A stretch of DNA of 64,000 bases from Lepidodermella squamata (GCA_047495785.1 JBLDXI010000029.1:558001-622000); one strand, 5' to 3'. Shown: positions 41,122 to 64,000, counted from the stretch's first letter. Program-made: numbers and translations. The notes: generated by a model from the sequence alone, not told the origin.

Positions 41122-41647
41122 TTTAATACAGCTAGCAACGACCTCCCAACGTGTTTCTACAGCGGTCCTGGTTCAAGCAATGCCGGATTTTGAATTTCGC
41201 GCGGTTGCTAACAACGTTGTTATGCAAAAATTAATTTATTAATTTTAATTTATCATGCTATTATTAACATATAAATATAAGTTGGTAATTTATTTGTGAC
41301 AGCGATTTTTTAACCACGTGATTTGCCGTCACGTGCTCAGCTTTTACAGCTTTTACGTTCGGGACATATCAAGTTACGGCCGTGGAGCGGAGCGGTGTGG
41401 TGATGCAGTGTTATCTGTTATCTGGTTTCGGGTTTCAGACGCGCCGGGTTCATTGCTAACCGTCTCTTATCGCAACGGCAAATATTACGATGCTTGGTGA
41501 ATTATCTGCCGCATTCGTTTTCGCTGTTATCGTTAACTTTTCATTGTAGTTTCAATGACGGCTGTCTAATACTACTGATAGCACTTGAACTTGTTTTTAT
41601 TTTGCTAAATCTAAATACGATTGCTCTGATTTAGTTAGATTCGTAAA
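41122..41647. promoter_or_regulatory. Putative bidirectional promoter between the EGF/LamG gene and IMP3
   Basis: Head-to-head ATGs about 530 nt apart. Contains an E2F-like TTTCGCGC near 41195, CACGTG E-boxes near 41315 and 41330, and RFX-like half sites. Confidence 0.45.
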
Positions 41648-42975: not shown

Positions 42976-45900
42976 ATGGCACCTATTGATAAGAAAATCA
43001 GCAAAGATCCTCCTGATATCGAGGTAGTCTCAAGGGAGTTTCGCAAATGATCAATTATGATTGCTCTGTTGTTACAGGCTATTCTCGCTTTAAATCCGCG
43101 TATTCCAACCCATGCAAATTTGAAGCCAACCGCTGTTACGAAGACTGAGAAAAAGCATTGGAAGCGGAATTTGGATATTGAAACTACGTGTTCAGTATGC
43201 AACTTCATCAGATTGTGAAAATTACACTAAATTGTTTTCTTTTTCGTAGCATGGGTGTTCACCTCTGAAGAAAAACTTTGACGATATCAAGCCAACAACT
43301 TTGAGCGAACGAGGCGCTTTACGGGAAGCATCCCGCTGTTTGAAATGCGCCGATGCTCCGTGCCAAAAAGGCTGCCCAACTCAACTTGATATTAAAGCTT
43401 TCATTTCTTGCATTTCTAACAAGGTAATTTGTCATTTCTTTACTAAACCTTGCTGGAATTAAATGATTTTTTCCAGAATTATTATGGAGCTGCTAAGTTG
43501 ATTTTTTCGGACAACCCACTTGGGTTAACTTGCGGCATGGTTTGCCCTACAAGTGAGCTGTGCGTCGGCAACTGTAATTTAGCCGCTACTGAAGAAGGCG
43601 CCATTAACATCGGTGGTCTGCAGCAATTTGCCACTGAAATTTTCAAGCAAATGGCGATCCCGCAAATCCGAGATCCTAATCTAACGCCGCTTGACCAACT
43701 GCCCGAGTTCTACAAGTCGCCTATTGCATTAATAGGCTGCGGCCCGGCTAGTATTAGCTGTGCTACGTTTCTCGCGCGTCTCGGCTATACTAATTTGACG
43801 ATTTTCGAGAAAAACGACTACGCTGGTGGGTTGAGTTCGTCTGAAATTCCGCAGTACCGTCTGCCATTTGATGTCGTCAATTACGAAGTTTCGCTGATGA
43901 AAGACTTGGGCGTCAAGGTAAATTTCAGAATTTAGAGCATTCTGAACTGAAGCTTTTAGAATTCCAATTTTTTTAATTTTTCGCCAAGAATTTTGCGTTC
44001 TAACTTATTCATTTTTGACTATTTTTCAGATTGTTCCAAACCAACCGTTCAAGAAAGGCTCTAAAACCGTTGAATCCCTGAGAAGCGAGGGCTTCAAGGT
44101 TGTTTTCATCGGCATTGGGCTGCCGGATGCCAAGAAAGACCCGATATTTGCGAACCTGAACCCGCAAATGGGCTTCTACACGTCGAAAGACTTCCTGCCT
44201 CAGGTGTCTAAAGCGAGCAAACCCGGCGTTTGCGCCTGCAAATCCGCCGCAGCCTCCGCTGAGCTGCCAACCCTGCACGGTAATGTTATTGTCCTGGGCG
44301 CGGGCGATACTGCCTTTGACTGCGCGACTTCGTCACTGCGATGCGGTGCCCGACGTGTTTTCGTCGTTTTCCGCCGCGGTTTCACGAATATCCGCGCTGT
44401 TCCGGAAGAAATGGAACTCGCCAAGGAGGAACGTTGCGAATTCATGCCGTTTTTAGCCCCGAAACAGGTCATCGTGAGGAACAATCGAATTGCCGCGATT
44501 GAATTTGTTAAAATGGAGGAAACTGAGGATGGACGGTTCGTTGAAGATCCGGACCAAATCGTGCGGCTGAAGGCTGATTTCGTCATCTCCGCCTTTGGCT
44601 CGGGTCTGTCTGATCCGGACGTGTTGGCGGCGTTTGGGCCTAATGTGAAAATCAACAAATGGGGCCTGCCTGAAGTTGACCCGATGACAATGCGGTCGAC
44701 TGACCCTGATGTGTTCATTGGGGGCGATTTGGGCGGCCTGTGCCAGACGACCGTCGAGGCGGTTAACGATGGCAAAAATGCAGCTTGGAATATCCACGCT
44801 CATTTATTGCAGGCCAACAAGGTAAATTCAGAGTATTTCTTTAAATACACTTGATCCAAGTAAAACCTAACAATACCTATTTGGCTATTCGCGGCTTATA
44901 GTTCGAGAGCTTTAAGTTCAATTATTTCAAAATTGAAGAATTATAAAACTAATTACTCGAAAATTCTTGGATGTCTTCTATTTAATTCATGCATTTTGCG
45001 TTGTTAGGCGGAAGAAAAATATAAAAGAATATTGCAATCTTTTAAAATTCAAAATTCACAACATAATTATTTCCGGAAATTGTTAAAATTTCGCTTGTTA
45101 ACTTTTTAAATAAATACATCCACATTAAATTTTTTCACCATACTGAAAAACTGAATTCGATGCTTGATTTTAAATAACTATTTTTCTCTAAGTCTGAAAT
45201 TTCTAACTTGAAAATTTCAACATTTGTTTGTAAAACAGTGAATACGAAAGTATTGAAGCTTCGCTGAACGCCAGTTTTTGGTTTCATTCATAGTTGCATT
45301 TTTTTTTAATTTTTTTTTTAGTGATTTGCCCACCCCTTGCCCACCTGATAAATTCTCTAGTTAAAATTGTTATTGCTCCTTTTGCCTAAATAATTATAAT
45401 TTATAATTATAATTATGATTCGCAGGTTGCTGTGCCTGAGAAGCCGCAACTGCCGCTGTTCTGCACGCCCGTCGATCTAGTCGACCTGTCGGTCGAAGTG
45501 TGCGGCATCAAGTTCGAGAACCCGTTCGGCCTCGCCAGCGCCACGCCGACGACCAGCGCGCCGATGATCCGCCGCGCCTTCGAGGCCGGCTGGGGCTTCT
45601 CACTGACGAAGACGTTCTCGCTGGACAAAGACCTCGTCACCAACGTGTCGCCCCGCATCGTCCGCGGCACCACCTCGGGCCACATTTTCGGCCCCGGGCA
45701 AGGCGCCTTCCTCAACATTGAACTGATCAGTGAGAAAACCGCCGAGTACTGGTGCCGGTCGATCACCGAATTGAAGGAAGACTTCCCGACCAAGCGCATC
45801 ATCGCCTCGATTATGTGTTCGTTCAACGAGGCTGACTGGACGGAACTGGCGAAAATGGCCGAGAAAAGCGGGGCCGATGCGTTGGAGCTCAATCTGAGCT

Positions 45901-47813
45901 GCCCGCACGGCATGGGCGAGCGCGGTATGGGCCTCGCCTGTGGCCAGGACCCGCATCTCGTGCTCAATATCTGCAAATGGGTTCGAGCTGCGGTGAAAAT
46001 TCCGTTTTTCGCGAAACTGACCCCGAACGTCACGAATATCGTCGAAATTGCGAAGGCTGCCCACCAGGGTGGGGCGGATGGCGTGACTGCGACTAACACA
46101 GTCTCCGGCCTGATGGGCCTGACTGCGGATGGGGTCGCCTGGCCTAAAGTTGGCTCGACGCAGCGAACGACTTACGGCGGTGTTTCCGGCAATGCGATTC
46201 GTCCGATTGCGTTGAAGGCCGTGACTGCCATCGCCCGGGCGCTGCCTGGCTACCCGATCCTAGCAACAGGTGGCATCGACTCGGCCGATGCCGGGTTGCA
46301 GTTTTTGTACGGCGGCGCGTCGCTGCTGCAGATTTGCTCGTCGGTGCAGAATCAGGATTTCACGGTTGTTGACGATTACATCAGCGGGTTGAAGTGCCTG
46401 CTGTACTTGAAGTCGTTGGACGACGAGAAGGCCCTCGCCGGCTGGGTGGGCCAGTCGCCGCCCACGCCGCGCCACCAGAAGGGCAAGACCATTGCCATCA
46501 AAGAGCTCATTGGCGCGCATTTGCCGCCGTTTGGCGAGTTCCAGCGCAAACGCGAGGAAATCACCACCAAGGTTGGTTTTTCGAGGAACATTTTATCGAA
46601 ATATTTTGATTATAGTTTTGATTATTAGTTTTGATTATCAGGTTATTTTCAAGAAAAAACGAAAATTCTATTGAAGTTTATCATCCTTCGAAATATTTCG
46701 AAATATTTTCAATATTTCTAAAATTCCATACTCTTCACCATTTCTTTCGTATTATTCTTACTTTAAAATTCGAAGGCTGGGTCTTGAAATTTGGGATGTG
46801 GAACTAATTGGAATAATTTGGTACGGAATTCAATAATTTGGTAATGACATCACATTATCCCTTTCAAAACTTGACAAATCATGTAAAATTTGCTTTTTTG
46901 AGAATTGAAAAACTAAGTAACCAGGATTCTCAAAGATGATGCATTATCCGGATAAGGCGCATAATTTTATCTTTATCCACTTTAGTTTCTGGTTTCTGAT
47001 ATTAACCATAAAATTACTAAAGATTTGAAGAAATAATTTCAAGCTTAGAAAAGTTAAAATTTGGTTCAAGACCCGTTTTCAAGGTTGTCATAATTAGCTG
47101 TGGCGATCTTTGAGGCTTAGCCATCACGAACTTACTAGGTTATAACTTTGAAATAATCTGATATAATATGGGTTCGAATGGAATTTTTCTCATTATTCAC
47201 GAAATAATCACTTCTAAAAATGGGATTATTAAGAATTCAAATTGTTTAAGATCTCTGTCAATTCCTATAATTTTTAGTTTCCCTGTGGTTATGAATTTCA
47301 TTAATTTCTGAAATCCTAATTATCTGTCCCTAGGTGAAATTGGACTCAGCCCTATTGGTTGATGACGACATCGTGGCGAACACTGCCGGCGTTGATAAAC
47401 GCAACAAGCCCGTGCGCCCTGTGCCCCGCATCGAAGACATGGTGGCCAAGGCCGTGCCGCGCATCGGCACCTACAACGACCTGAACAACAAGGAGCAGGT
47501 CGTTGCGCTCATCGACGACGACATGTGCATCAACTGCGGCAAGTGCTACATGACGTGCAACGACTCGGGCTACCAGGCGATCACGTTCGACGCCAACTCG
47601 CATCTGCCCTTCGTCACGAGCGAATGCACGGGCTGCACCCTGTGCCTGTCGGTCTGCCCCATTCCGGACTGCATTGAAATGGTGGAGAGGACCATTCCTT
47701 ACAAGCCGAAGCGCGGCATTGCCCCGAAAAGCGAGCTGAATGGCGAGAGCAACGGGATTACTGAGCGTAGAAGTTCAGTTTTGGAGCTCAATTCCAATGG
47801 AGCTGTTCATTAA
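42976..47813 (+). CDS. DPYD: Dihydropyrimidine dehydrogenase (NADP+), 7 exons (42976-43023, 43078-43194, 43250-43423, 43477-43917, 44030-44821, 45426-46571, 47334-47813)
   Basis: [51 protein letters not shown], catalytic [15 protein letters not shown] and C-terminal 4Fe-4[12 protein letters not shown] / [12 protein letters not shown]. Junctions are in phase. Confidence 0.97.
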
Positions 47814-48371: not shown

Positions 48372-49923
48372 ATGGCCGACTTTTTAATATTTGGCATGAC
48401 CATTGCAGCTTTTGCAGCTGGAATTTTCGCGGTTGACCCAGAGTTACCCAGGGCCCTGGAGTACCCCATGACAAGGTGTCTAGGCCCGGCTCCGACCCGA
48501 TTCTCAAACTGCTCCCACGAAGACGCCTCGTCTCTGGAGATTCACTATTTCTTCAACACAACCAGCTCGTTATGCGAGCCGTATACCGCAGCCAGACTCG
48601 ATAAGTTGATAATTTGCGCCGAGGAGACGGAGAACAATTTCCCGGACAAGGTTACGTGCCAAAGCACTTGCATTCCGATTTCGATGATGCCACCGCTGCC
48701 GCAAGTGGAGCCGCAGCCTTTGTTCGATTCCCCGCCTGGAATGCCGCCGAGGTTCTCGCAAGTTTCTGTTTGTAACACTGCGACTTATGCTGAGGCAAAT
48801 GGGCCTGGTTGCAATGCCATTGTAAGGACCTGAATCTCCCTCAATATTCTGTATTTGTCGCCTGTTTCTGATGTAGCCATTTGGCGGAGAAAGTTTCACC
48901 ATGTTCCAGTACAACGTCGCTAGGGGCGATTGTGAGCCGTTCAGCTTCACAAACTGCCGACCTGTCAGGAACATGTTTCCGACTCGGGAGGTCTGTAAAC
49001 GGGCCTGCAAGATCAACAGGAGAGATTCAGGTTGAACACTATTTTGATCTCAGTCAAACTTAGCGGCACATTTTTTGGATTAGATGTTTTGAATATGAAC
49101 AGCTGCCCGCCATCGCTGGATCCTGTAGAATGCCTTGCGAATCCTTGCGACACTGCCACGTAAGATGTTGACCAACGCATTGTCTTTTGAAGATGCTTTT
49201 TTGATACCTATTGCCGCATGTTAGGTGTGAAGCAGTTCCTAACGCCGAGTGTCGAGGTTTGAGCCTCATTTTTTGCGCTCATTTTGCTTCACAGCAAGTT
49301 TTATTATATAGCTTACTACTGCGGTAGCTGCAAAGCCAAGTTTTACGTCAACAATCAGGAGATCAACTGCGCTGCTTCCGGGAGCTTCTTGCCGATTTCC
49401 AACAGCCGGAGCCTGCGGTTTATGAATGTGTGGCCTTGTCAGGGTGACCAACCATGCCCGCAGGCAATGGAAACAACCCCTGCCCCTTCTCTTTCTCCTT
49501 GCCCTAATCCATGCCAAACAACAACAACGACTACTACGACTACTACAGCTCCATGCACGACCACGACTCCGAGAGCGCCTTGTCCATCAGAGGACCCGAG
49601 TAAGTCGATAAAATGCAGCTTAACGTTGAACCCTTGACTATGTTCATCTCACAGTATTGACTGATCTCAAAAGGTTGCCACCGCCTTACCCAAAGTCTTA
49701 TACCTGTCCAGACGGAGTCAGACTGAAGTTGTGCTCGACCAATCCGTGCAGCAACAATTATTGTCCTATGTATCCGGAAGCAGTTTGTTTTCCGTAAGTT
49801 ATCATAGTCAGTTTTACCCAACAAATTGACCATCATTTTCATCACAGGAACTATTGCGGAGCGTGCCGAGCTGAGTTTTTCATTGACGAGAAGCCAGTCG
49901 ATTGCTATCCAAGGCTCCAGTAA
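48372..49923 (+). CDS. Array gene K1: secreted, 2 divergent Kunitz domains, 2 eight-Cys repeats, Thr-rich linker
   Basis: Signal peptide, YFFNTTSSLCEPY...NNFPDKVTCQSTC, spliced CNTATY...MFQY..GDCEPFSFTNC..NMF, and NPC..CPxxPxAxC..YCGxCxAxF repeats. TAA at 49921-49923. Confidence 0.8.
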
Positions 49924-50025
49924 AAATCAAAGACGCTAATTTTTAATACCTCTGAAAAAATCTCAGTGTTTAGAAAGAAAGTCGCTTCAGATGCATTTCG
50001 ATGTCACTTCATTTTTAGAAATTTA

Positions 50026-51363
50026 ATGACATTCCTATTGGTACTGACCCCATTCTTAATACTTTTTGCTTTGGCGGGTGGATTATCTGATGTTTTTCGG
50101 GAAAAATGTCTGGGCGACTATCCTGTAACCACGAGTTGTGCTAATGAGTGGAACTACATGTACGAATCTTATTATTCGATTCGTTACTTCTTCAACTCAA
50201 CCTCAGGCATTTGCCAAAGCTTTCGCTTCTTCCCTACAGCTGATTCAAACCGTTTCTGCACCCTGGACTCGAAAAACAGCTTCAAGGATGAAATAACTTG
50301 CAAATTGGCGTGTTTGGTCGTAGACCTTGGAGAGGCGGACGAAAGCGTATTACCCCAATCAACGCCGCGAAAAATTTCCTTTCAAACTAGGCCAATGCTG
50401 AACAGGCCGGTAAACTATCGGCCGAATTGTAGGCAGCCAAATATGGCTGACGGAAGGTGCGATACTTTTGTTGTAGTTTACGGCTATGATGTGCGGTCCC
50501 AGCGTTGCCAACCCTTCTTCGGCTGCAAAGGCACATGGTTTTCAAATCGATTCGATTGCCGGGACGCTTGTGAGGACTTCAATGCTTTTACCCAGGCGAC
50601 CCCATCTACAACGCCGCCTGTCCCAGCTCCAGAGCTGATTTTCTCACTAAATCAAGGTAACTAGTGACAGTTTTAAAAAGTCTAAGCTTTTGACTCGGAT
50701 TTCTCAGACTGCAACACTCCAACTTACGGTGAGGTCTATCAATCTCAGCAATGCTTATCTCTAAACGTCAATTATCAAAAAGGAGATGTATGAACCGATT
50801 GTTTCGGATTTGTGGAGTTTCTCTGTTTTTCTCTCCAGGGGCATCAGATGTATCAGTACAATAAAAGATCTGGGCAATGTGAGCCATTCACCTTCACAGG
50901 GTGCAAGTAAGTCTACAGACAAATTTTGCAAATTTTAACGGTTCAGTTTCAGCCCGGTTTGGAACATGTTTTTGACTCTAATTGATTGTCGAACGACTTG
51001 CGAATTTTTATGGCTAGGTATAAATAATTATCTGAAATGCTTCCTTCCCTCATGCCGGTTTTCAGCATCAGAAGGTGATTGTCCAGCTGGCCTCAAGCCT
51101 AGTACCTGCAAGAAAAATCCTTGCGATAACACCAGGTATTCAGATTTCCGAGTTCGCGGTTTTGGTATTCTCTCTTTGTTTTTTCGTGAAGATGCCCAGC
51201 TGTTCCGAATGCGGTCTGCCGCGTAGATAATTGCGGCGGGTGCTTTGCCCGGTTCTATGTTGGCAGCCGGCCGGTACAATGCGAGACTGATATGACGCCC
51301 TTACCAAGGCGCGCAACTACAGCGCCACGAATCCACCCGTCTACTACAACTCGCAGTAGGTGA
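50026..51363 (+). CDS. Array gene K2: secreted, 3 divergent Kunitz domains, 1 eight-Cys repeat
   Basis: MTFLLVLTPFLILFALAGG signal, six exons joined in phase by roughly 50-nt introns, TGA at 51361-51363 and AATAAA at 51367. Confidence 0.8.
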
Positions 51364-51936
51364 CTTAATAAAGTCCGCTATGAATAATATATGTCGCCGT
51401 TATTAAGCCTACCAGCGAATTTTTCTAACGCCAGGACTTTGCTTTGGTTGTTTTCGCGGCAGCAAGTGATGAAGAAAAGCCATTGTTCGGTTGGCCAGCG
51501 GAATTAAACTTTGATCGAGTTGCACGATGGGGTGTTGTCGGCTCAAATTTTTTCCCTCAGCTGGATCAGCTTATTAATATCGTATGCGATACACATGCAC
51601 AGTTTGTTGCACGCAGTGACTGCTGACTGAAAGAGACCACTACTACTACAACGTGTTTTGTCGCGCGCTGCCATCACCAGGGCGATGTTTACAAATGACA
51701 GGCACTTCACGTGTTAAATATGCACGGGTAAACAACTTACGAGCGCTCAATTATGCCGCTGAATGATGATAATGATTCGAGCGCGCGGCTCGCCGAAAAA
51801 TATTGCCTTGCAAAAGTTACAGAATAAAAACTGGCAATTCGGCCACACGCTTGATGAAATATTGATGACGCCTAAACTTGGCCAGGTGCGATAAGCCGCG
51901 CATTTTCCTACTAACACCATACTATACACCGGAAAA

Positions 51937-53834
51937 ATGTGGCTCTACATACCTTTAGCGCTGTTTTGTATCACTTTAAGACAGGCGCGATGTGCCATTT
52001 CGATGCGTGGCTCCTGCTTCGACGCCCCGCCGCGGTTCCTCGGATGTCCATATCGAGCAACTACGTCGAAAACGACTTACGACATCAGATATTTCTACAA
52101 TTCCACAGTTTACGCGTGTCAGATATTTTTCGACATAAGAATAGTCTCGACTTCAGAGAGCTGCATGTCTAGCTCACAGAATAAATTCGACACAGAGCTG
52201 TTATGTCAAAATTCTTGCCCTGCCTTGTTGCTTTCCCAGCTGCCTCCTCTTCCGTTTGTTGAAAGGATGAGGGCAGCGACTACCACTTTCAATCCTTACC
52301 TTCGTCAAATGCCGATTTATGTCGCCCAGAATAATAACGATTGGGCATATGATGGCTACCGAGACCCTCGCTGCTCAAGGTCAGTATCATCCAGCGCAGA
52401 TTTTGCAGGATGTCGATCTTACTTCCCAGTCTACGCCTTTGACGCCGAATTAGAAAAATGCGTCGTTCTTATATACGGTGGTTGTTCTGGGAGCTTACAG
52501 TTTAACGATGGCAGTAACAGATTTGCTAGTTTAGCGGATTGTCAGAAAGCCTGCCAGCGGAAGAAAGATCAGACAATTCCGCCTATTGGGAGCGTGATCA
52601 TTCCCGATCGATTCTCGAATCGAATCGATCAAGCATATGATGCAAGTGAGAGGCCGGTTAGGGCTATGGATCCGCCTCAGCTTAATATTCCATATGCACC
52701 AGCGAAGCCAATAAGGATCGTGCAGCCTCAAAGGCCAAGGCCGCCCCCTGCCGTTACAGTCCCGAAAACAACAACAACGACTACAACAACGACAACAACT
52801 CGCAGACCTGTGGTGATTACGACGAGGAGAGCATTGAGCAACCCCACCACAAGACGCGAGGCACCAAAACAACTAATTTACTCCGCAAATCCCAGTAAGC
52901 AGTATTAGCAAACCGCAAATGTTGAGTTAACCTAAATTTTAGGATGTAATTCGGCGACTTATGCGGAAGTCTACGGTTCTGCGACTTGTAACGATCATCC
53001 CAAAGGCGTCAAATACCAGTACAGTATTATCAAAGGACAGTGTGAGACAATTTACTATACAGGATGCAAGTAAGTCTTGAGACCTTCACTCCCGGTGTAA
53101 TTCAAGGCTTCTGATAGGCAAGTCATTGTCAACTTCTTCCATTCGGACTGGCAATGTCAGAAAAGCTGCGAGGAAGCACAGGCCCTGCCGCCAGGTATAA
53201 GGACAAGGTTGAACATTTCCGTTTTGCTGACCTCGATTTTTCAGTTGACTCAACCTGTCCACCAAATTCTTTTATCGCAAACTGCCCTGGAAATCCTTGT
53301 GATATGACCGGGTAAGAGTCTTTAATCAGGAAAATAATTGATAAATGTCGATGATCGATAGATGCCCCGGATTCCCGACCGCTGTCTGTCGACCTAATTA
53401 CTGCGGAGCCTGCAACGCCAAGTTTTTCTTGGATGGTAAAGAAATTGACTGTTACGCAAGGCTCAGCCCACCCGTATTCATTGAAACGACGACCCAAGTA
53501 CCTATACCTGTGAGAGTCATCACAGCCAACACACCTGTTCCTCAGGATTTAGGTGAGCAATTTAGTTTGAATAACGTATAACTGACGTATGACTCATTTA
53601 GATACAATGATAAACATGATTATCGAGACTTTGCCGCCTCCATATCCGCGATACTGGCATTGCTCTTCTGGAAGTAGCTTACAGCTTTGCCCGAGCAATC
53701 CTTGTCAGTCAAATTATTGTACACGATTTCCGCAAGCCGAATGCAGGCCTAACTACTGCGGGAAATGCACGGCAGATTTCTACGTCATCAACGTTCGTGT
53801 CAGCTGTGAGGAGATTACTTTTCGGGGTAGATAA
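51937..53834 (+). CDS. Array gene K3: secreted, 3 Kunitz domains, Thr/Pro mucin-like tract, 2 eight-Cys repeats
   Basis: Signal MWLYIPLALFCITL, Kunitz CVVLIYGGCSG..NRFASLADCQKAC, a poly-Thr run and CRPNYCG repeats. Confidence 0.8.
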
Positions 53835-54155
53835 CGGATGCCTGTAATTATTGTTATACTAAATTTGTAAATCTTTTCTAATTTGTTGTGAGAGACTTTT
53901 TTCGTTGAAGTAAAGAAACCAAAAGGGTTTAAAAGTGTCGCCTTTTGCATGATTATCACTGATGCGCGAATTGTTTACCTAAAGTTATTCGTGCGCATCT
54001 TATGGTAATAGATGAAACCCTTCATCTAACGGAAAATTAGTCCCTAGGTTATCACGATTCTGACAAAAAATGCCGCCCTAAGAGACCAACGGTGCCAAGG
54101 TCGCGTAGAACGTGTAGGATAACATTTTTGAAGCATTCACATAAAAAGTAAAAAG

Positions 54156-55190
54156 ATGCTAACAGAGTTCATTTCCGCCATTTTAGTGCTAGCTGTTTTC
54201 ACTGGAAGCAGTTACCAGCAACCATCGATTTGCTACGACCCAGTGCCAACCTTTCTCGGCTGTTTAGGAGAAACAATACCTGGCCAATCATTCCGGCCGG
54301 AGTTTGAAGTCCGATTTTACTATTCCCGAAATGCAGGATGCATTTCTTTCCTCTTTTGGAATGGGTGCGTACTCCGGACAGGCAATAACTTCATCAACAA
54401 GGCCCAATGTGAGATGAATTGTGGCACAGGGCCTACGAGACCACCGACATCAACCCAGTCTCCTAATTCTCTGTTTGGGGATCCCGCAAGGAATCTTCCT
54501 TGGAGAATGCTTGCGACTGGGGAAATTCCGTCTCCCAATCCTCGTAATTTAATCCAAGTTTGAATTATTTCGATCGACTTAATGATTACTGCTTAGGTTG
54601 CAACATGCCTGCATACGGCCGACAACCTCTAGCGAACGACTGCCTGGAACCTGTAAGCTTTTTAAGCTATGAAATTTGTTAAATAACCTGTATTAAAAGT
54701 TGAGAATAACTCGATATGAATACGACCAAACTTTCGGAGTGTGCCAACCCGTGATTTACGATGGCTGCAGGTAATTTGAAAGCTCATATTAATCGAATCT
54801 TAGATTTTTGCCCAGGCCCCTCTCCCGAAATATGTTCGAATCAATGGCCGAGTGCAAACGAGCTTGTTCTGAAATGCCCCAAACTAAGCGCCAGAGTAAG
54901 AGTCTTGAATTCATTCTCTAATAGTCATGATTATTTTTGTCTAGAAACCACGACTTCAGCTACTACTACCACTACCACCCAATCAACAACAACGATAATG
55001 GCATCTACCATGTGCCCGCCTGATAAGCCACTTCACTACTGTTTTGTGAATCCATGCGAAGTTGAAGAGTTAGTCACTAATCATTCAAATTTTGGCTGTA
55101 AGTATTAGAAAGTGTTTTTCTAGATGCCCCGGTCCGTGTCAACCAGATTATTGCGGAGGCTGTAATGCTGTTTGTTTAGATTGGAGATGA
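54156..55190 (+). CDS. Array gene K4: secreted, 2 divergent Kunitz domains, Thr tract, 1 shortened Cys repeat
   Basis: Signal MLTEFISAILVLAVFTG, FYYSRNAGCISFLFWNGC..NNFINKAQCEMNC and a spliced CNMPAYG domain. TGA at 55188-55190. Confidence 0.78.
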
Positions 55191-55871
55191 GCATTTAACC
55201 AGAACAACATACATGAAAATGGAAACTATACATCCCTTTGATACGTGAATAAACATAATTCAAGCGTGTAACAAAGAGCACTTAATAGCAGGACATTGAT
55301 TTCCTGTTTACACAAGAAAAATCTGTTTATTTGCTACAAGTCAGGTACAACAAACAGATCTTCGTACTAATTTTAGCCCGAGCTCTATTTTCGATGTTGG
55401 TTTTTTTCATAATTTCATTGGTAATTGATGCGCGCACGCAAAATTTATGCTAATTTCTTTGCCAACACTGCCGCCGTCTCAAATGAGTGGGGCCCACGTA
55501 AATATTTAACATTAAAAAAACGGGTAATCTTTTAAAGAGCGTCAATTGTCGTTAAGCCACTTAGCAAGTATGTTTTCTGTGTATGATATATGGCTTTACG
55601 CTTACATTCTTTGTGCCAACAACTCAGAGCTGCGCAGCAAACAAGCCTTTCGCATTCAGCGTTTTCAAACAAAAAAATTAGCGCCTGTGATGCGTTGCGC
55701 GGCTGCCGTCTCACTGTTGCAGATAAACGTAATTATCAGTAATTTTCTAGTGCCGCCATCTGTGTGCGCATTTTTCACTCTTCAAAGCGCTGTACATTAA
55801 TGCAAAAGACGCATCGCAGACTTTTTCAGCCAAACTCAACATAATTATAATATGGCTCTCTCATCTAGAAA

Positions 55872-58800
55872 ATGTTGAAAATTACCGTGGTAATAGCTGT
55901 AATTGCTAATCTATCCTATGGAATGCCATCAGCTTTCGATCAAAATATGCTGGAAACCTTAATCGCGAGTTTTCGGGATCCAACCTTTGCCGATAGCCCG
56001 TCGATGCCTCTCAACGACGCCTTAGACCCGCCGTCGAACATTTGTTACGATCCAATACCGGTTACTCAGACTTGCGCTGATGTTCGCACCGAGAGAAGAT
56101 TTTTCTACAATATGACATCAGAGCGATGCGAATACTTCACATGGAATGGCTGCAATGAGACGCGCAACATGTTTAAAAGCCCAATTGAATGCATTTGGAA
56201 TTGTTTGCAACCACCGTCCGATTCTAGCAGTCAAAGTCTGATTCAAACTCCGAGAGGAAGAGAACGGTCTCAGGGAAAGCTGAAATATAGGACAACAACG
56301 GTGAAACCGAAACAAGCTTACCCATCTAGCTTTTTTAAGCAGGAGTACGACGACACGTTTCCATATAATTCTGACCAAGGAACCTCATCAGGGCAGTCTA
56401 AATGCAACCAGGCCATTGATACAGGACCGTGTAGAGCTTTCATTCCATCATACGGCTACGAGGCATCGAGCGGAAGTTGCAAGCTTTTTATTTATGGAGG
56501 CTGTTTAGGGACGGAGAATAGGTTTCAATCGAATGATGAATGCATGGAGGCTTGTGGATCTACAAGAGCACCTAATGACCGCCGATTGCTGCAAAATGAA
56601 CTACCTGGATCTCAATCGAAAGGCCCTTTGATAGTACCTACAGTTCCGGAGGGACAATCAAGTAAGCAAGTTTGTATCTCAAAGAAGTTATGACTAGATA
56701 ATCTGTTTCAAGTTTGCAATTCACCTACATATCCCGAAACCAGCGGCAAAAATTGCGCAGTCGCTGTAAGTTCTTATTTTCATCTAATCTATGAGATGCT
56801 CACACAATTTTTCTAGTTTGCATCTCCGATGTATCAGTACAACAATATTATTGGCCAATGTGAGCGATTCACCTATACAGGATGCGAGTAAGCTTGAACG
56901 TGCATATAGGTCAATTATTGTAAACTAACTTGGACTTCTGACTTAAAGCCCTGTCGCAAACATGTTCAACACAATGGATGAATGCAAGAGTACTTGTGAC
57001 GGAGCTGGATCACCAGCGATGCGACCTGAGAATGACGACCTGATACAACTACCTCCTGAAAACAAAAGATGCCCTTCCGGCCAGCGCAAGGTGATGTGCC
57101 TGGCCAACCCTTGCGATGTTACGAAGTAAATCTTGCAATTACATGAGTGATTTGATAATATTTCATTTTATTCAGATGCGCGGGTTATCCTAACGCGCAG
57201 TGCAGGTAATATTCCCTTGGTTTTGTTCTTGACAGCTTGTATAATTTAAAAAATTATAGACCTGATTATTGCGGAGGTTTGGCTTTTACAACTGATTCAT
57301 CTGGATGGAAAGAAATCCAAATTTTTAGGCTGCACAACAAGATTTTATGTCAATAGTCGTGAAGTTAACTGCTCAGCTTCATCTCAGTCACAGCAGACCC
57401 GTCAAAGTCTCGTCTTGGTCGGTTCGGGAGGGGGTCAGTACCAACAGCCGTTTGCAACAGGGCAGTATCAGTCGATTCCTATTTCAAGCGGTGGTATCCA
57501 AGCAATTCCAATCAGCTCCGGCAGTCTCCAGCCCATCTCAGTTGGATCAGCGCAACTACAGCCTATTTCAATTGGAACAGGACAGTTGCAACCGATACCA
57601 ATATCCTCGGGTCAATTCCAAGGTTCTTTCCCGATTCCTATTAGTTCTGCGCAAGTGCAGCAACAGATTCCGATTGCAATTTCTTCCGGCCAGCCGCAGA
57701 TTATTCCGATTCAGGGAATTCAACAACAGCAACAGGTTCCGATTTATGTTCAAAATCAACAGCCTACTTATATAGGTGGAACGATTGGTCAACAGGTGCC
57801 GATTTATATTTCGGGCGGAAGCCAAGTTCCTGTCGTAACACAGCCAGTCCAGTCACAACCCATTCAAGCCGGTTCAAGTAAGGAAATATTAGCATTTAAA
57901 TAGATGTTGTGACTTTCATACCCCTTCTAAGACTATCCTATCCCTATTGCCAACGTGTTGTATTACGCAACCACAAAATCGCCAATGGCTGTATCTACTG
58001 CTGACCAGTTAGATAGGCCGAGTAATTTGATTTGGAGATCTCTGGAGGATGCGAGTTCGCAAAAGACAATGACGGAGTCTCTGGATTCCGAGGAGATGCC
58101 AAAGAAATGCGGAAAAGACCTGACGACAATCGAGTGCGGTTTCAATCCTTGCGAAGATAAAGTATGTCCCGGATTCCCGATGGCCACATGCCGGGTTGAT
58201 AACTGCGGTGGTTGTTTCGCAAGATTTTACATCGGAGATCGAGTGATACTTTGTACAAAAGCTGAGCATGAACTACCCATCTTTTCCCACCACGACTTGG
58301 AGGGGCATCCACCAGATAGCGAATTCTTCTTACCGGCGCTCATCCCCATGCCCATGAGGGTTATATATCGGCCATCAAATTCTCGGAAACAGTCAAACGA
58401 AGCGATGGCGAAAGGTTCGAATACTCGTAGTTTCTTCAGGAGTTGCCCACCTGGGCTATACTGGGTGGAATGCGAAAGCAATCCGTGTTTGGATGCAACA
58501 TGTCCAGCTGCTCCCAACGCCTCATGTCGGGTTAACAATTGCGGTCTGTGTTCGGCTGATTTCTACGACGATGATAACAACAAAATGGAATGCTTCATAG
58601 AACTCGCGGATGAATAGTTCTACCTCTTCATGCTTCAATTTTTGCTACCTCAACCGAAAATAAAATAGTTTCTTTTCATACTTTACCCATTGTTGTTTCC
58701 TTCGATTTATTTATGCCGTACTTTGACATTGAAGTTTTATTCCAGTTTCATGCCCTGCTGGAGTCCAGCTGGTGAGCTGTGCATCAGTAAGTCCTCAGCT

Positions 58801-60479
58801 TTTTCATCATCATTTCAGCATGAGTCACATAGGATCCTTGTGGCACGAATCCATGCCCGGCTTTCGCGAATAATTATGCTATTGTTTGGTAAGGTTATTG
58901 AGAGTTCTCCAATGTAGCATTTGAATTTTTCCGTGAAGCCTACCATACTACTGCGGAGCCTGTACTGCAGTATTCTACAATTTCACCAGTGGTCAGCAAG
59001 TATCATGTCCCACGGCAAGTAAGCTATTTCGCAACCAGTTTGACATGACGTATTTGAGTGATTGAAAAGCAAACCCCAATCAATTACCACCTTGGCTGAT
59101 CCCACCCGGAGTTATTTTCACTCCAGCGCCAGTAATTACTGCCCCACCAGTAGCCACCCTACCACCCAATATTCCAGCCGGGATCGATCAGCGATGCTTA
59201 CTGCCTCTTGCGTCTGGCAACTGCAGTGGGTTTCTAATCGCGTATGGCTTCGACATAATTCTGCGGCAGTGCATGCAATTCATCTATGTGAGAGTCCTAG
59301 GATAAAGGATGACCTTTGAAATTCTGTCTCTTATTTCAGGGCGGCTGTAATGGAAATGCCAATAACTTCCCATCGCAACAGGCTTGTCAGATAGCCTGTT
59401 CAGGAACGGGCGGTGTGGTTACTCCTGCGCCCGTAGTTACCCAGCCAACACCTGTAATTCTATCTTATAATCCCAGTAAGTCTAGATTCACCAATTTTCG
59501 AATCTCAATAATTTTTACCTTTCCAGTATGTAATACGCCTACGTATGGCGACTCAACTGGAAGGACTTGCACGTTAACGGTAAAATTGATCCCAAAATAA
59601 AATCGAAAACTGATTTTTGGTGTTCAGCTCTCTTGGCCGATGTTTCAGTACAGTACTGCTGTCGGGAGATGCGTTCCTTTCACCTATACCGGTTGCACGT
59701 AAGTTTCAAATATCACATCGGTTCAGCCATCCTAAATACACCGCAACAGAGCGGTCCAGAACATGTTCAACTACTTGAATGACTGTCAAAGGACTTGCGA
59801 GAGCGCATTTTCTACGGCTGCAACATTTCCACCAGCCACTGTTGCGACAACACCGCCTCCAGGAGGTAAAAAATCGGATTTGAATTAGAAGATAATTAAT
59901 GCAGGTATTAAGGAGTCTCGTGCCCAGTTGGCGTGCCCATCGTCTTTTGTTTGGTCAACCCATGTAACACGGCGACGTAAGATTTATTTGTTTAACGACA
60001 ATGGGGTCGATCTATATTTTTTGCAGTTGCCCAGCCTACCCAACTGCAACTTGTAGATCTGACTACTGCGGAGGTTTAGTTGCTGCCATTAATGTTTCTT
60101 AATTCAATTGGAAATGTTTCAACAGGATGCAATGCGCGATTTTACTGGAATAATCTATTGGTTAACTGCACGCAGACCACCCAAGCTACCGTACCACCTG
60201 GTTGGCCTATTTTGGTCGGAGGGCAGTACTTTCCCAGCTTCCAGGTGTCAATCAATGGAGTAACATGTCCTCAAGGTGTTTCGGTCGTTAACTGCATTTA
60301 TGTGAGAAATTTTACAACTTTTCGTCAATAGTTTTTAATTTTTGTGTAATTAGGATCCATGCTCGTATGCGAAGCCATCAGTCGCTCTAGCACAGGGAAC
60401 TTATACTTGCCGAACAAACTATTGCGGCGGATGCAATGCTGAATTTTACAGCATAACCACCGGCCAAAGATTGGCCTAA
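55872..60479 (+). CDS. Array gene K5: secreted, 3 Kunitz domains, a Cys repeat and a Gln/Ile/Pro/Ser/Gly repeat, then either terminal exon A (57932-58617) or multi-exon end B (58746-60479, 2 more Kunitz and 3 Cys repeats)
   Basis: Canonical Kunitz DTGPCRAFIPSYGY..CKLFIYGGCLGTENRF. The phase-1 donor at 57878 is in frame with both the 57932 and 58746 acceptors. Segment B has no ATG or signal peptide of its own. Confidence 0.72.
57436..57870 (+). repeat. Coding repeat of about 10 aa, consensus GQLQPIPISS
   Basis: GQYQSIPISS GGIQAIPISS GSLQPISVGS AQLQPISIGT GQLQPIPISS GQFQ..PIPISS, decaying into QQVPIY units. Confidence 0.85.
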
Positions 60480-61445
60480 AGCAATTTGTGTTGTGATTAC
60501 TGTTCTAGTCTTGTTTCTATGGGTAGCTGTAAGAGATAAAAATCATTAAAAAATATTTTGGCTGGAGTCACGCGACCGGTGCGAGATTTTCACACCTGAG
60601 AAGAGGCTAAGACGCGGGTTTCAACAAGTGATGACAGCTTGAGAGAAGATGCAAATTGAGCAGCGGGCGTATCCAAAATATCCACCCCCTACTTTCCTTG
60701 TTTTGAACCCTCGGCCGTGATTATTGACGCTTCCGCTGGCGTACACCTACTTGGCCACTAGCTACTAATGACGCAGAGCACAGCACGAGTTACTTGACTT
60801 GCACATAGCATTGATCAATGGGCGGTGTTATCGAGGGTGTTTACACAGCCATGTAACGTATTAAGGACTCACGCGCACACATACTAAGTAATAGCCGCAC
60901 ATTTATTCGGAGACGACACACGCATAAAAGAAACGCCTCTGAGCGGCGAGCAAACAGAGGCGCGGCTGATGATGATACGCCTCATTGTATGTAATGTGTC
61001 ACAGCGTGCAAGTTGCGCGCGTGTTTTTTGCGTGAATAATCGCACCCCGCGCGCTCTACTATCGGTATTTGCTCGAGGTGTGTACGAGACGAGAAAAAAA
61101 CCAGGCTCAAGTGCCCGCCGATATCAACCTGATGCCTTCTGGTCCTGGCGATACTACCACTATTTGTATTTGCTCAGGCTCATGAGTCGATTCGCCAGTT
61201 CCACGGCCCCGTTTTTCCACACTCTTCAACTTTGCGTGCATTTTTTTCTTTATACCATAACTATTGATCGCTGGTCAGACTTTATTCACACCTGACGAAG
61301 TTATTACCCAGAGAATGTTCCTTCGATTAAGTGCAGTCTGTGAGAGTTCGATTTCTGGAAAAAAGTGCGGCTTATTATTAGGAATCTTTAAGCCATTTAA
61401 CAAGTCTCATATGCTTGCAATTGCGTTTTTTAGGTATAGATAGAT

Positions 61446-64000
61446 ATGCATTCTACTATACTGGCATTTGTTGTACCTTATTGGATCCTATTGGGTCTAA
61501 CCTCAGCAATCGACGACCGATGTGCTCTAGCGCCAGATTCCGGTCCTTGCCTAGCAATGACCGTTCGTTACTTCTACAACCCTCGAACAGCCTGTTGCGA
61601 GGCGTTTCAATACGGAGGTTGCCTCGGCAACACTAATAATTTTGCGACAAAACAAGCCTGCCTCAGCGCATGTCAACCTGACCAGCCTTTGGATGACAGC
61701 AACAAAACTCCTTCGTCGCAAATCAACCCTAGTAACATTTGCTTGCTGCCTAAAGACCCTGGACAATGTTACGCGCGAATACCAGCATGGTATTTCGACG
61801 CAGATTCGAAAAGCTGTCAGGCTTTTTTTTACTCCGGCTGCTTGGGGAATAAAAACTTGTTCCCGACAAAGGAAGACTGTATGTCGCGATGTGCGGCTTA
61901 CATTTCGCCATGGCTCCAGTTCTCCTCCTCAACAAATCGACCACCGACCTTGCTATCCCAGACCAAGTGCTTTGGAGTACTCTACTCAGATTTAATTTCA
62001 AAGGCGAATGTCCCATCCTGTAAGGCCATGTTACCTCGTTATCAATATAATCAAGCCGCTAGGAGGTGCGAGCGTTTCATTTACGGCGGCTGTCCCCCTG
62101 TTGATAACATGTTCCTTACCATGGAGGACTGCAGCGTCACATGCGCGGGAGTTACCGTGGCTCCAACTTCTCCAACTCCGCCTAACTTCAGATGCGTTCC
62201 TTTACCTGACATGAGTGACTGCAGTGCTAATTTGCCATACGAGGTATATCGATTCAACATTACAAGTCTGCAATGTGAGCGCGGCTGCAGCAGTAGGAAC
62301 AACAGGTTCATGTCTATGGCTGACTGTATCGACGCGTGTCATCCTGTGACTAAACCTCCGAATTACTTACCCCCGATTTGCTTCTTACCGCCGGACTCTG
62401 GTACGTGTTTCGGTAGGGCAGTCAACTATTTCTACAATCCCACAACCCGAGATTGTCAGCCTATGAGGTGATTATTGGGAAGTTTCAAGCTTTATATTTA
62501 AAAATTCAATTTTAGCTACGGAGGATGCGGCGGCAATGCGAATCGATTCGAAACCAAGGAGCTATGGTAAGGATAATGGACTCAAAACTCAAACTTATTG
62601 CTTTACGATTTCCTTTACAGTGATAAAACTTGTAATTCGGCCAGAGTTAGTTGGACTACTCCAGCGACACTGCCAGCTACGACATGGGAGTCCCAAATTG
62701 ACCTGTGTAAACTGAGGGCTGATCCAGGACCCTGTAAAGCCCTATTTCCCATGTACTTCTACGATGCCTTATCAAATAAGTGTCAAATTTTCAATTATGG
62801 AGGCTGTGATGGGAACGGAAACAGGTTTTCAACCCAAGTTGAGGTAAGCTTTGAAAATTATTTTGTATTCTTTCGAGCTTCCCTTTTTTCTAGTGCGAGG
62901 ACAGGTGTTTACCAGGTGGCAGCCAATGGAATCCATTTTTAACAACCACACAGCCCCCACCTTTCACAACTGCAAAAGGGCCAATGTCAACGCTCTGCCC
63001 ACCTGATGCTCCTTTCGCAAAATGCAACTACGATCCTTGTGGGAATGCAACATGCCAAGGTTATCCTGGTGCGAGTTGCGTGCCAAATTTTTGCTACTGC
63101 ACAGCTGATTTCTACCAAAATGGACTGAAAATCAACGCTTGGTGCCGTAATTCCACTACAACAACTCGGGAACCTATGTTGCCGACTAGCCCTTCCCCTC
63201 TATGCTCACCAAAGAATTGTTTGGTCAATCCATGCGATACTAAGAAATGTCAAGGTGAGTTTCTTAAGCAGCCCCGATTCGTAAAAAATATGTTTCTTTA
63301 ATAGGATATCCTTATGCTGAGTGTTATCCTAACTATTGCCGATGCACTCCAGAATTTTTTGTCAACGGTCGGAATATCACCGAATTTTGCTTAATTACTG
63401 CGACGAATCCTCCCCCAGTTCAGGCGGTTTGCCCACCTGGAGTGGAACAGGTCAACTGCATTGAGAACCCTTGCAATTACGCAAAATGCAGTTTGTTCCC
63501 TGATGCTAAATGCGTGCCTAACTTCTGCGGCAAATGCGCCGCTGACTTCTACCTCAACGAGTACAAAATCAGTGAATGCACAGATCTTCGAATTGACTAC
63601 ACAACCCCCTCAGCGCCGTGGTCTAATTGGCCTGGGTCAAGGTGCAACCAACCTGTTGCAGTCGGAAATTGCGATGATAGTATTTCGAAGTTTTTCTACA
63701 ATTCGAGTTCTGGAAATTGCCAATGGTTTTCCTATTCGGGATGCGGCGGGAATGACAACGTTTTCGACACGAAAAAAGAGTGTGAATCTACTTGCAGAGG
63801 CGTGTTTTCAACTATGCCTCCAACTACTGGTAAGATTTCAATTTCACGTATCGAATTGACGGTGAGTTTTTTAAATAGTTCCGATATCCCTGCCTATAAG
63901 TGTTACGTCATGTCCACCTGGGATTTCGCAAGTTACCTGCGCCTATAATCCATGTGAGAATGCAACTTGCCCGGGATATCCAACTGCGACTTGCGTGCCT
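61446..64000 (+). CDS. Array gene K6 (runs off the window): secreted, at least 7 Kunitz domains and at least 4 eight-Cys repeats
   Basis: Signal MHSTILAFVVPYWILLGLTSA, canonical Kunitz GPC..RYFYN..C..FxYGGC.GN.N.F repeats and CVPNFC repeats. Confidence 0.88.

Follow-up and report, generated by a model that had tools for sequence, protein, structure and literature searches.

The stretch of DNA analyzed here (the window) comprises 64,000 nucleotides from the gastrotrich Lepidodermella squamata. A total of six co-oriented genes, encoding 22 Kunitz or Kunitz-derived domains and 16 copies of a module with eight Cys residues (8-Cys module), lie on the + strand between positions 48372 and 64000. Their start codons are located at 48372, 50026, 51937, 54156, 55872, and 61446, and all six are followed by a hydrophobic, signal-peptide-like N-terminus. 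Thr/Pro linkers connect domains of the cluster proteins, and GT..AG introns of 50-56 nt interrupt domains; removal of these introns restores complete 8-Cys modules. An initial annotation of this DNA had described at least six co-oriented genes with signal peptides and Thr/Pro linkers between modules, and both claims are borne out; the tandem family of secreted mosaic proteins that it proposed is real. The features are as follows, in window positions.

48372..49923 (+): gene A; signal peptide; stop codon TAA at 49921
Gene A, Kunitz domains: long-loop copy 48477-48671; second copy about 48780-49008, intron 48822-48876
Gene A, modules: module 1 at 49104-49370, in three exon pieces; Thr-rich linker; module 2 at 49705-49905, intron 49794-49847
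50026..51363 (+): gene B; signal peptide; Thr/Pro tail at the end
Gene B, Kunitz domains: long-loop copy 50107-50313; 50428-50571; 50845-50907 plus next exon
Gene B, module: module 3 at 51080-51282, intron 51136-51191
51937..53834 (+): gene C; signal peptide; poly-Thr linker between second and third Kunitz domains
Gene C, Kunitz domains: long-loop copy about 52015-52218; 52399-52554; 52981-53070 plus next exon
Gene C, modules: module 4 at 53256-53452, intron 53312-53361; module 5 at 53661-53807
54156..55190 (+), end approximate: gene D; signal peptide; Thr-rich linker between Kunitz domain and module
Gene D, Kunitz domains: long-loop copy 54231-54422; two-exon copy 54703-54768 / 54826-54867
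Gene D, module: module 6 at 55013-55169, shortened, terminating in ...CGGCNAVC
55872..60540 (+), end approximate: gene E; signal peptide
Gene E, Kunitz domains: 56043-56204; 56403-56555; 56826-56997 (two exons); 59195-59399 (two exons); 59637-59696 plus next exon
Gene E, modules 7-9: 57070-57372 (four pieces); 58108-58254; 58444-58593
Gene E, modules 10-12: 58751-58981; 59921-60169; 60266-60455 (module 12, without the fourth Cys)
Gene E, low-complexity stretch: 57415-57903, rich in Gln/Pro/Ile/Ser, 160 aa
Gene E, domain order: three Kunitz domains, module 7, low-complexity stretch, modules 8-10, two Kunitz domains, modules 11-12
61446..64000 (+): gene F, first part; signal peptide; continues to about G000:C29:623250
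Gene F, Kunitz domains 1-4: 61521-61673; 61740-61892; 62013-62144; 62205-62339
Gene F, Kunitz domains 5-7: 62379-62561 (two exons); 62706-62843 plus next exon; 63643-63795
Gene F, modules 13-15: 62996-63145; 63212-63390 (intron 63255-63304); 63430-63579
Gene F, module 16: 63911-64000, crossing the window end, with the remainder in adjoining DNA
Gene F, domain order in the window: six Kunitz domains, modules 13-15, the Kunitz domain at 63643-63795, module 16

Gene E is probably one long gene with presumably continuous exons; no internal signal peptide was seen in it. A paralogous locus with a layout like that of the cluster is present on contig C24. Homology searches with cluster sequences were made exon by exon, and a word-based search for homologues of the first exon of gene C returned 1191 candidates, none of which were significant, and no transcript-derived proteins of the species.

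A local Kunitz HMM detected 20 whole or exon-split domains in the cluster, and two further N-terminal long-loop domains, those of genes B and C, were recognized via a motif common to the same domain of genes A, D, and E, which together account for the roughly 22 Kunitz or Kunitz-derived domains first reported. The Pfam model PF00014, whose gathering cut-off is 21 bits, matched the canonical copies of genes B, C, E, and F with scores of 29-207 bits. In genes A and D the first domain reached 17-18 bits and, because this is below that cut-off, it is best called Kunitz-derived. While single-exon copies fit the pattern C-x8-C-x15-C-x7-C-x12-C-x3-C, the N-terminal Kunitz domains of genes A-D keep the six Cys residues with longer loops. 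For the long-loop variant at the start of genes A-E, no relatives were detectable in a word-based search. The residue that follows the second Cys of a Kunitz domain corresponds to the P1 position in BPTI; among the domains read here it is R, K, L, Y, F, S, D, N, or A. Several domains combine K or R at this position with canonical spacing. Many others carry D, N, S, or A, or have remodeled loops, and these may inhibit nothing. Kunitz was the only domain that Pfam recognized, in every cluster ORF scanned.

The 8-Cys module is about 50 aa long. An HMM built from five single-exon copies and run on all six-frame stop-to-stop segments of the window recovered whole or exon-split copies on the + strand alone, all between 49104 and 64000 (whole copies at E 1e-21 to 1e-24); the minus strand and the remaining 48 kb gave no match better than E 0.3. 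The resulting 16 copies match the number given in the initial annotation, whose module consensus also agrees with their alignment. Their conserved core reads CP.G...V.C..[DN]PC....CP..P.A.C..NYCGGC.A.[FW][YF]..G..V.C, with a Cys spacing of 8-4-4-7-4-2-12, and the copies are mutually 31-44% identical. In an alignment of 400 unique copies, the eight Cys residues are 97-100% conserved and the position four residues after Cys7 is aromatic (F in 67%, W in 21%). The most conserved stretch, NYCGGCNA.F, appears to be structural. Reactive-site inhibitors typically have one hypervariable loop, and none was seen in this alignment. The eight Cys residues most likely form four disulfides. Co-loss of Cys residues was of little use for deducing how they pair, since apparent losses were mostly alignment shifts and only a relocation of Cys5 in Solemya modules was real. 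In the predicted structure, the C-terminal half of the module is a small beta-hairpin tied by disulfides.

A known identity for the module was sought in several sources. Pfam scans covered 20 ORFs and 116 proteins matched by the module; no family was found for the window modules at E<=1, and none covered the module at E<=0.01 in proteins with 12-14 tandem copies. Searches of PDB sequences with three profiles and two single proteins (E<=10) gave chance matches only. The ESM Atlas yielded a single unnamed rotifer cluster, with TM scores <0.31; literature searches yielded no description of the module, and no source found gave it a name. The earlier statement that the module does not match the spacing of EGF, TIL, WAP, antistasin, or thyroglobulin domains holds at the level of both Pfam families and PDB sequences. 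Of the follow-up analyses proposed with that statement, the profile search matched no Pfam family and found protein clusters in many phyla, and the fold prediction with Foldseek pointed weakly to the snail inhibitor NvCI.

A module profile built from 12 copies matched 1234 protein clusters (defined at 50% identity) at E<=1e-3 and 428 at E<=1e-10. Animal sources include a nematomorph, a nematode, a rotifer, a tardigrade, molluscs, echinoderms, hemichordates, a tunicate, amphioxus, and cnidarians; outside of animals, the module was found in Amoebozoa (Balamuthia), green algae (Volvox, Klebsormidium, Bryopsis, and Tetradesmus), and the euglenozoan Entosiphon. A few bacterial MAGs also gave matches. 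Loci related to the Myxococcales-MAG protein P0050 are bacterial and carry Kunitz arrays without the module. Judged from these sequence matches, the module is an ancient and very widespread extracellular domain rather than a gastrotrich invention, and it pairs repeatedly with Kunitz domains, in other phyla too. A reading of it as the mark of an undescribed system peculiar to this locus is not supported.

Among 109 matched proteins, most have no Pfam domain. The commonest Pfam partners in this set are Kazal (5), Kunitz (4), antistasin (4), TIL (4), WAP (3), and thyroglobulin-1 (3), with pacifastin in 1; WAP, TIL, and pacifastin are present in larger module-bearing proteins. Because most matches hold the module alone, its association with inhibitor domains derives from about 20 of the 109 proteins. 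Sushi, TSP1, EGF, VWC, MAM, and HYR domains are partners as well, and some of the module-bearing proteins are small and secreted, with two modules. Module-bearing proteins have been auto-named kielin/chordin-like, notch-like, zonadhesin-like, hyalin-like, or balbiani ring protein-like; the first three of these names are accounted for by real EGF, VWC, TIL, and WAP domains that the same proteins carry outside the module.

An alignment of gene F to P0011, a protein of 1248 aa that contains 11 Kunitz domains and 5 modules in the same order, is colinear for each domain (about 43% identity, range 42-49%), and P0011 is, as judged from this alignment, the orthologue of gene F. Like the cluster proteins, P0011 and a papilin-like protein of the sea cucumber Apostichopus japonicus (XP_071834293 / PIK43392) carry, behind a signal peptide, many Kunitz domains with copies of the 8-Cys module set among them; the sea-cucumber protein follows a strict (module-Kunitz)x8 plan. 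Genes A-E differ from both in beginning with the long-loop Kunitz variant. True papilin combines an ADAMTS-like cassette (TSP1 repeats and spacer) with Kunitz, Ig, and PLAC domains. A papilin identity for the cluster was rejected, since its ORFs lack the ADAMTS-like cassette, TSP1, Ig, and PLAC, and Kunitz is the only one of papilin's domains found in them by Pfam. Compound ('mixed') inhibitors, such as WFIKKN and the WAP/Kazal/Kunitz mosaics, are secreted proteins that carry several families of small disulfide-rich inhibitor domains on one chain. The cluster resembles them in that the module occurs, in other species, beside Kazal, WAP, TIL, antistasin, pacifastin, and thyroglobulin-1; it departs from them in that the partner domain here is nameless, lacks a solved structure, and has a putative inhibitory role.

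Taken together, the evidence tips modestly toward a tandem gene family of long standing whose secreted products would be compound protease inhibitors or matrix proteins that employ an ancient disulfide domain. The array of at least six genes, which extends past the window end, would encode secreted mosaic proteins with a common chain plan: a signal peptide, a long-loop Kunitz-derived domain (genes A-E), canonical Kunitz domains, and then at least one 8-Cys module, all strung on Thr/Pro linkers that are mucin-like and putatively glycosylated. Their likely job would be to control extracellular proteolysis as compound inhibitors kept in a secreted or matrix layer. A Lys or Arg after the second Cys would be expected to direct a Kunitz domain against trypsin-like enzymes, and a Leu, Tyr, or Phe against chymotrypsin-like enzymes. 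The module could itself bind proteases as an additional unit, or it could be a rigid neighbor that presents the adjacent Kunitz domain.

It is possible, if somewhat unlikely, that these are instead structural or adhesive matrix proteins, in which Kunitz domains and modules serve as inert disulfide-stabilized blocks or cross-linkers of cuticle scales, eggshell, or duo-gland adhesive, with linkers that set material properties and no inhibition of proteases. The Thr/Pro linkers and the low-complexity stretch of gene E are compatible with such a role, as are the many Kunitz domains that are of the long-loop variant or whose second Cys is followed by D, N, S, or A, and the names hyalin-like, zonadhesin-like, and balbiani ring protein-like borne by related proteins of other animals. 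Gastrotrichs, moreover, possess both scales and adhesive tubes (PMC11660948). However, inhibitor domains are the commonest Pfam company of the module, several Kunitz domains retain K or R along with canonical spacing, and the module is found in small secreted proteins of two modules as well as in single-celled algae and amoebae, organisms that have no cuticle scales, eggshell, or adhesive.

A further alternative concerns the identity of the module itself. NvCI, a picomolar metallocarboxypeptidase inhibitor of the snail Nerita versicolor and the strongest known carboxypeptidase inhibitor, headed the results (4a94_C and 5mrv_C) of each of five fold searches run with two independent module models (Foldseek TM 0.44-0.51; VIA Z 2.9-3.7, rmsd 2.5-2.8 A over 41-43 residues, 21-23% identity). 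Both are small beta-hairpin domains tied by disulfides with nearly equal spacing of Cys and aromatic residues. The NvCI fold is defined by a two-stranded beta-sheet and disulfides 9-23, 15-51, and 27-38; its Cys residues are at 9, 15, 23, 27, 38, and 51, around a buried Trp42 (PMC5511257), giving spacings of 5, 7, 3, 10, and 12 against 4, 7, 4, 2, and 12 for Cys3-Cys8 of the module, and the F or W four residues after module Cys7 corresponds in spacing to Trp42, four after Cys38. The models raise the prospect that the module might be a widespread ancestral form of the NvCI fold and that at least the C-terminal modules might inhibit M14 carboxypeptidases, which would make these proteins dual serine-protease/carboxypeptidase inhibitors; a module is the last domain in genes A, C, and D and in the C24 paralogue. 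This is quite improbable, however. A Z below 4 is within the chance range for small proteins, and the runner-up, a neurexin EGF-like domain, lies close (Z 2.3-2.5). NvCI, which has six Cys residues on a single domain, showed no sequence-profile link to the module and never appeared in HMM or phmmer listings of PDB sequences, even at E<=10; it has no counterparts of module Cys1 and Cys2, and its hairpin is 8 residues longer. Further, NvCI acts via a free two-residue C-terminal tail (PMC6780499), whereas 12 of the 16 window modules are internal and, where a module ends the chain (222 proteins), the tail behind it is missing or mostly polar (D, N, R, RR, DATN) rather than hydrophobic. No relatives of NvCI were mentioned in the NvCI literature found. 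The neurexin match, the disulfide-tied hairpin of the C-terminal half, and the NCBI auto-names kielin/chordin-like, notch-like, and zonadhesin-like could be read as signs of a very divergent member of a named Cys-rich family (EGF-like/laminin-EGF, VWC/FnI-like, or TIL) that current HMMs miss. The module does resemble EGF-like domains in being small, extracellular, and disulfide-rich with a beta-hairpin, but it differs in its eight Cys residues, their spacing, and the lack of any EGF-family Pfam match. The Pfam searches above and the origin of the auto-names in other, genuine domains of the same proteins speak against this reading, and the Cys spacing of the module is not known to fit any of these families; such an identity is very unlikely.

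Secreted proteins with many Kunitz domains are a familiar type, and what this analysis usefully adds is the second, 8-Cys domain. More than 1200 protein clusters contain the module, with sources as distant as gastrotrichs, rotifers, echinoderms, Volvox, and Balamuthia, but it has no Pfam model, name, or solved structure. Proteins that consist of the module alone currently bear the label "hypothetical" or the misnomers kielin/chordin-like, notch-like, or keratin-associated. A definition of the module family would mend many of these annotations. A bolder and fairly unlikely extension is that the module and NvCI form one ancient superfamily, which would make the module an unrecognized eukaryote-wide protease-inhibitor domain, and loci such as this one would strike serine proteases via Kunitz domains and a second class, for example metallocarboxypeptidases, via the module. 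The inhibitor-domain company of the module and its possible kinship with NvCI lead to a concrete and cheaply testable hypothesis.

A total of 16 copies of the eight-cysteine module (about 50 residues, numbered 1-16 along the six tandem genes A-F) were recovered when an HMM built from five single-exon copies was run on six-frame, stop-to-stop segments of the whole window. These copies, complete or exon-split, lie only on the plus strand at 49104-64000, with whole copies scoring E 1e-21 to 1e-24 and no match better than E 0.3 across the other 48 kb of the window or the minus strand. Split modules 2, 3, 4, and 14 become complete eight-cysteine modules, and the second Kunitz domain of gene A is likewise restored, on removal of 50-56 nt GT..AG introns, the host genome being intron-bearing with very short introns; module 16, interrupted by the window end, is completed in the adjoining downstream DNA. 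The modules are only 31-44% identical to one another, indicating that the array of genes A-F is old.

Canonical Kunitz domains were confirmed by Pfam PF00014, and a local Kunitz HMM identified 20 domains, whole or split. The first domain of each of genes A-E is a long-loop Kunitz derivative that keeps six cysteines and an [FY][FY][FY]N.T motif; those of genes B and C, recognized only via the pattern common to these first domains, bring the total of Kunitz or Kunitz-derived domains to 22. Together with six plus-strand ATG codons, each followed by a hydrophobic N-terminus, these counts bear out the initial annotation, which had listed at least six co-oriented genes with signal peptides, about 16 modules, and about 22 Kunitz or Kunitz-derived domains. 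In genes A-D, a Kunitz subtype starting CN[TSM][AP]TY regularly precedes a module. The cluster and its surroundings are laid out as follows.

39158-41172, minus strand: matches to EGF-repeat regions of Notch-like hemichordate proteins (24-30% identity), and thus an EGF-rich gene about 7 kb upstream of the cluster
45432-47813, plus strand: two long exons of a dihydropyrimidine dehydrogenase-like gene (dihydroorotate dehydrogenase-like barrel and 4Fe-4S ferredoxin end), directly upstream of gene A and forming the 5' border of the cluster
48372, 50026, 51937, and 54156, plus strand: ATG codons of genes A-D, small genes encoding a signal peptide, a long-loop Kunitz domain, 1-2 Kunitz domains, then 1-2 modules
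49921, plus strand: TAA stop of gene A, with a spacer of just 102 nt before the ATG of gene B
55872, plus strand: ATG of gene E (five Kunitz domains, six modules, and a 160-residue Gln/Pro/Ile/Ser-rich stretch)
57415-57903, plus strand: the 160-residue open frame of that stretch, almost only Gln, Pro, Ile, Ser, and Gly, with repeats such as PISSGQ and QQVPIY, between modules 7 and 8 and in frame with the flanking exons
60266-60455, plus strand: module 12, lacking the fourth cysteine, the eighth not being seen in its last exon
61446, plus strand: ATG of gene F (six Kunitz domains, then module-module-module-Kunitz-module, then past the window end)
4175-4516 of L013, the DNA directly downstream of the window, plus strand: degenerate module-like pieces
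5370-5537 and 6910-7077 of L013 (G000:C29:627370-629077), minus strand: a pair of nearly identical Kunitz-like domains, each having a long first loop, on the opposite strand to the cluster and just downstream of it

The ends of genes D and E are approximate, and E is probably a single long gene. Its low-complexity stretch has no Pfam match and might serve as an elastic or adhesive linker. Genes A and B share a reading frame, with a splice-acceptor-like ttttag 6 nt upstream of the gene B ATG, and their junction looks like an operon-type junction of the sort that spliced-leader trans-splicing resolves. The cluster runs on for at least 4.5 kb past the window end. Within the 121.2-Mb assembly (151 contigs), a paralogous gene of the same layout with five modules is present on contig C24, and single module copies occur on eight further contigs. 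A 1248-residue orthologue from ENA assemblies (P0011) is colinear with gene F over residues 1-1225, at 42-49% identity per segment, with its 11 Kunitz domains and 5 modules in the same order, which supports the gene F model and shows that the architecture as a whole has been under long-term selection.

Pfam gave no match at E<=1 to the module copies of the window, nor any over the modules of proteins with 12-14 copies, and profiles of 12, 50, and 109 sequences gave only chance matches against all PDB sequences at E<=10. Thus, as far as Pfam goes, the earlier view holds that EGF, TIL, WAP, antistasin, and thyroglobulin do not account for the module. A 12-copy profile scored against 1.84 billion representative proteins returned 1234 module-bearing proteins at E<=1e-3 (428 at E<=1e-10, 61 at E<=1e-30), many with 2 to 14 copies each. 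Named sources include Ecdysozoa and rotifers (Gordionus, Romanomermis, Rotaria, Hypsibius), with many small secreted two-module proteins in Rotaria; molluscs (Solemya, Littorina, Patella, Potamilus, Liolophura); four echinoderm classes (holothuroids, asteroids, ophiuroids, and one crinoid); three hemichordates, Styela, and Branchiostoma; cnidarians (Hydra, Clytia, Paramuricea, Dendronephthya, Montipora); and, outside animals, Balamuthia, Volvox, Klebsormidium, Bryopsis, Tetradesmus, Scenedesmus, and Entosiphon, along with two bacterial MAG proteins. No source of the matched proteins gives the module a domain name, and their labels are generic or borrowed (kielin/chordin-like, notch-like, zonadhesin-like, hyalin-like, keratin-associated). 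Across 400 unique full-length copies, the eight cysteines are 97-100% conserved; the other conserved positions are P3, G5, V9, [DN]14-P15, P22, P25, A27, N32-Y33, G35-G36, A39, [FW]41, [YF]42, G45, and V48. Repeated modules of a Solemya velum protein (P0003, KAL5020019.1) carry Lys for Cys5 and a new Cys two residues past Cys7 (CGGCNC), a relocation that could aid in deducing the disulfide map. The module is an unmodelled, ancient, and widespread eukaryotic domain.

AlphaFold2 models of the module from 12-row and 50-row alignments (mean pLDDT 84 and 87) form a small sheet of three strands in their C-terminal half. The snail carboxypeptidase inhibitor NvCI (Nerita versicolor) ranked first in 5 of 5 fold searches but weakly, with scores that fall where chance is common (Foldseek E 1.3-3, TM 0.44-0.51; VIA Z 2.9-3.7, rmsd 2.5-2.8 A over 41-43 residues, 21-23% identity), followed by an EGF-like domain of neurexin (Z 2.3-2.5). 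NvCI has cysteines 9, 15, 23, 27, 38, and 51, paired 9-23, 15-51, and 27-38, and a buried Trp42 (PMC5511257). Its cysteine spacings are 5, 7, 3, 10, and 12, versus 4, 7, 4, 2, and 12 for Cys3-Cys8 of the module, and the conserved F/W of the module lies four residues past Cys7, as Trp42 does past Cys38. A CP..PDATC stretch of NvCI resembles CP..P.A.C of the module. If Cys4 and Cys8 are both truly missing from module 12, this would fit a Cys4-Cys8 disulfide equivalent to 15-51 of NvCI. NvCI acts via a free two-residue C-terminal tail (PMC6780499), whereas the majority of modules are internal, and terminal modules are followed by a polar tail or by none. These differences, and the absence of NvCI from every HMM and phmmer search with the module, weaken the case for kinship or a shared mechanism; NvCI stays a lead, with remote homology about as likely as not and a common mechanism improbable.

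Among 109 module proteins of <=700 residues, the majority have no Pfam domain; the chief partners in the others are Kazal (5), Kunitz (4), antistasin (4), TIL (4), WAP (3), and thyroglobulin-1 (3), with pacifastin in one. Larger proteins also carry WAP, TIL, pacifastin, EGF, and VWC domains. Sea-cucumber "papilin-like" proteins show strict (module-Kunitz)x8 alternation, and both domains also occur together in a Myxococcales MAG protein and in Hydra and a soft coral. Kunitz arrays seem to occur in bacterial assemblies, since MAG contigs encode proteins with nine (Acidobacteriota; L017:27-1913, plus strand) and four (uncultured bacterium; L016:386-2374, plus strand) tandem Kunitz domains; in Myxococcota MAGs the number is one or two. 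The link between module and inhibitors is guilt by association, albeit consistent across phyla and seven inhibitor families. The residue after the second cysteine is the P1 position in BPTI, and some Kunitz domains of the cluster have retained K or R, or else L, Y, or F, there; these are likely active serine-protease inhibitors, the others probably being binding or structural. The secreted proteins would expose small disulfide-rich domains, arrayed along mucin-like linkers, and the module most likely contributes another protease-binding specificity or else rigidifies and displays the adjacent Kunitz domain. The main rival has the proteins serving only as structural components of cuticle scales, eggshell, or adhesive.

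The locus had been put forward as the best candidate in the window for an undescribed system, an interpretation that is right in part. The module does lack a model, but it is ancient and widespread in eukaryotes and not the mark of a new system in L. squamata, and the locus represents a tandem array of secreted-protein genes of a well-known type. The value of the finding lies in the definition of the module's domain family and in a testable inhibitor hypothesis.
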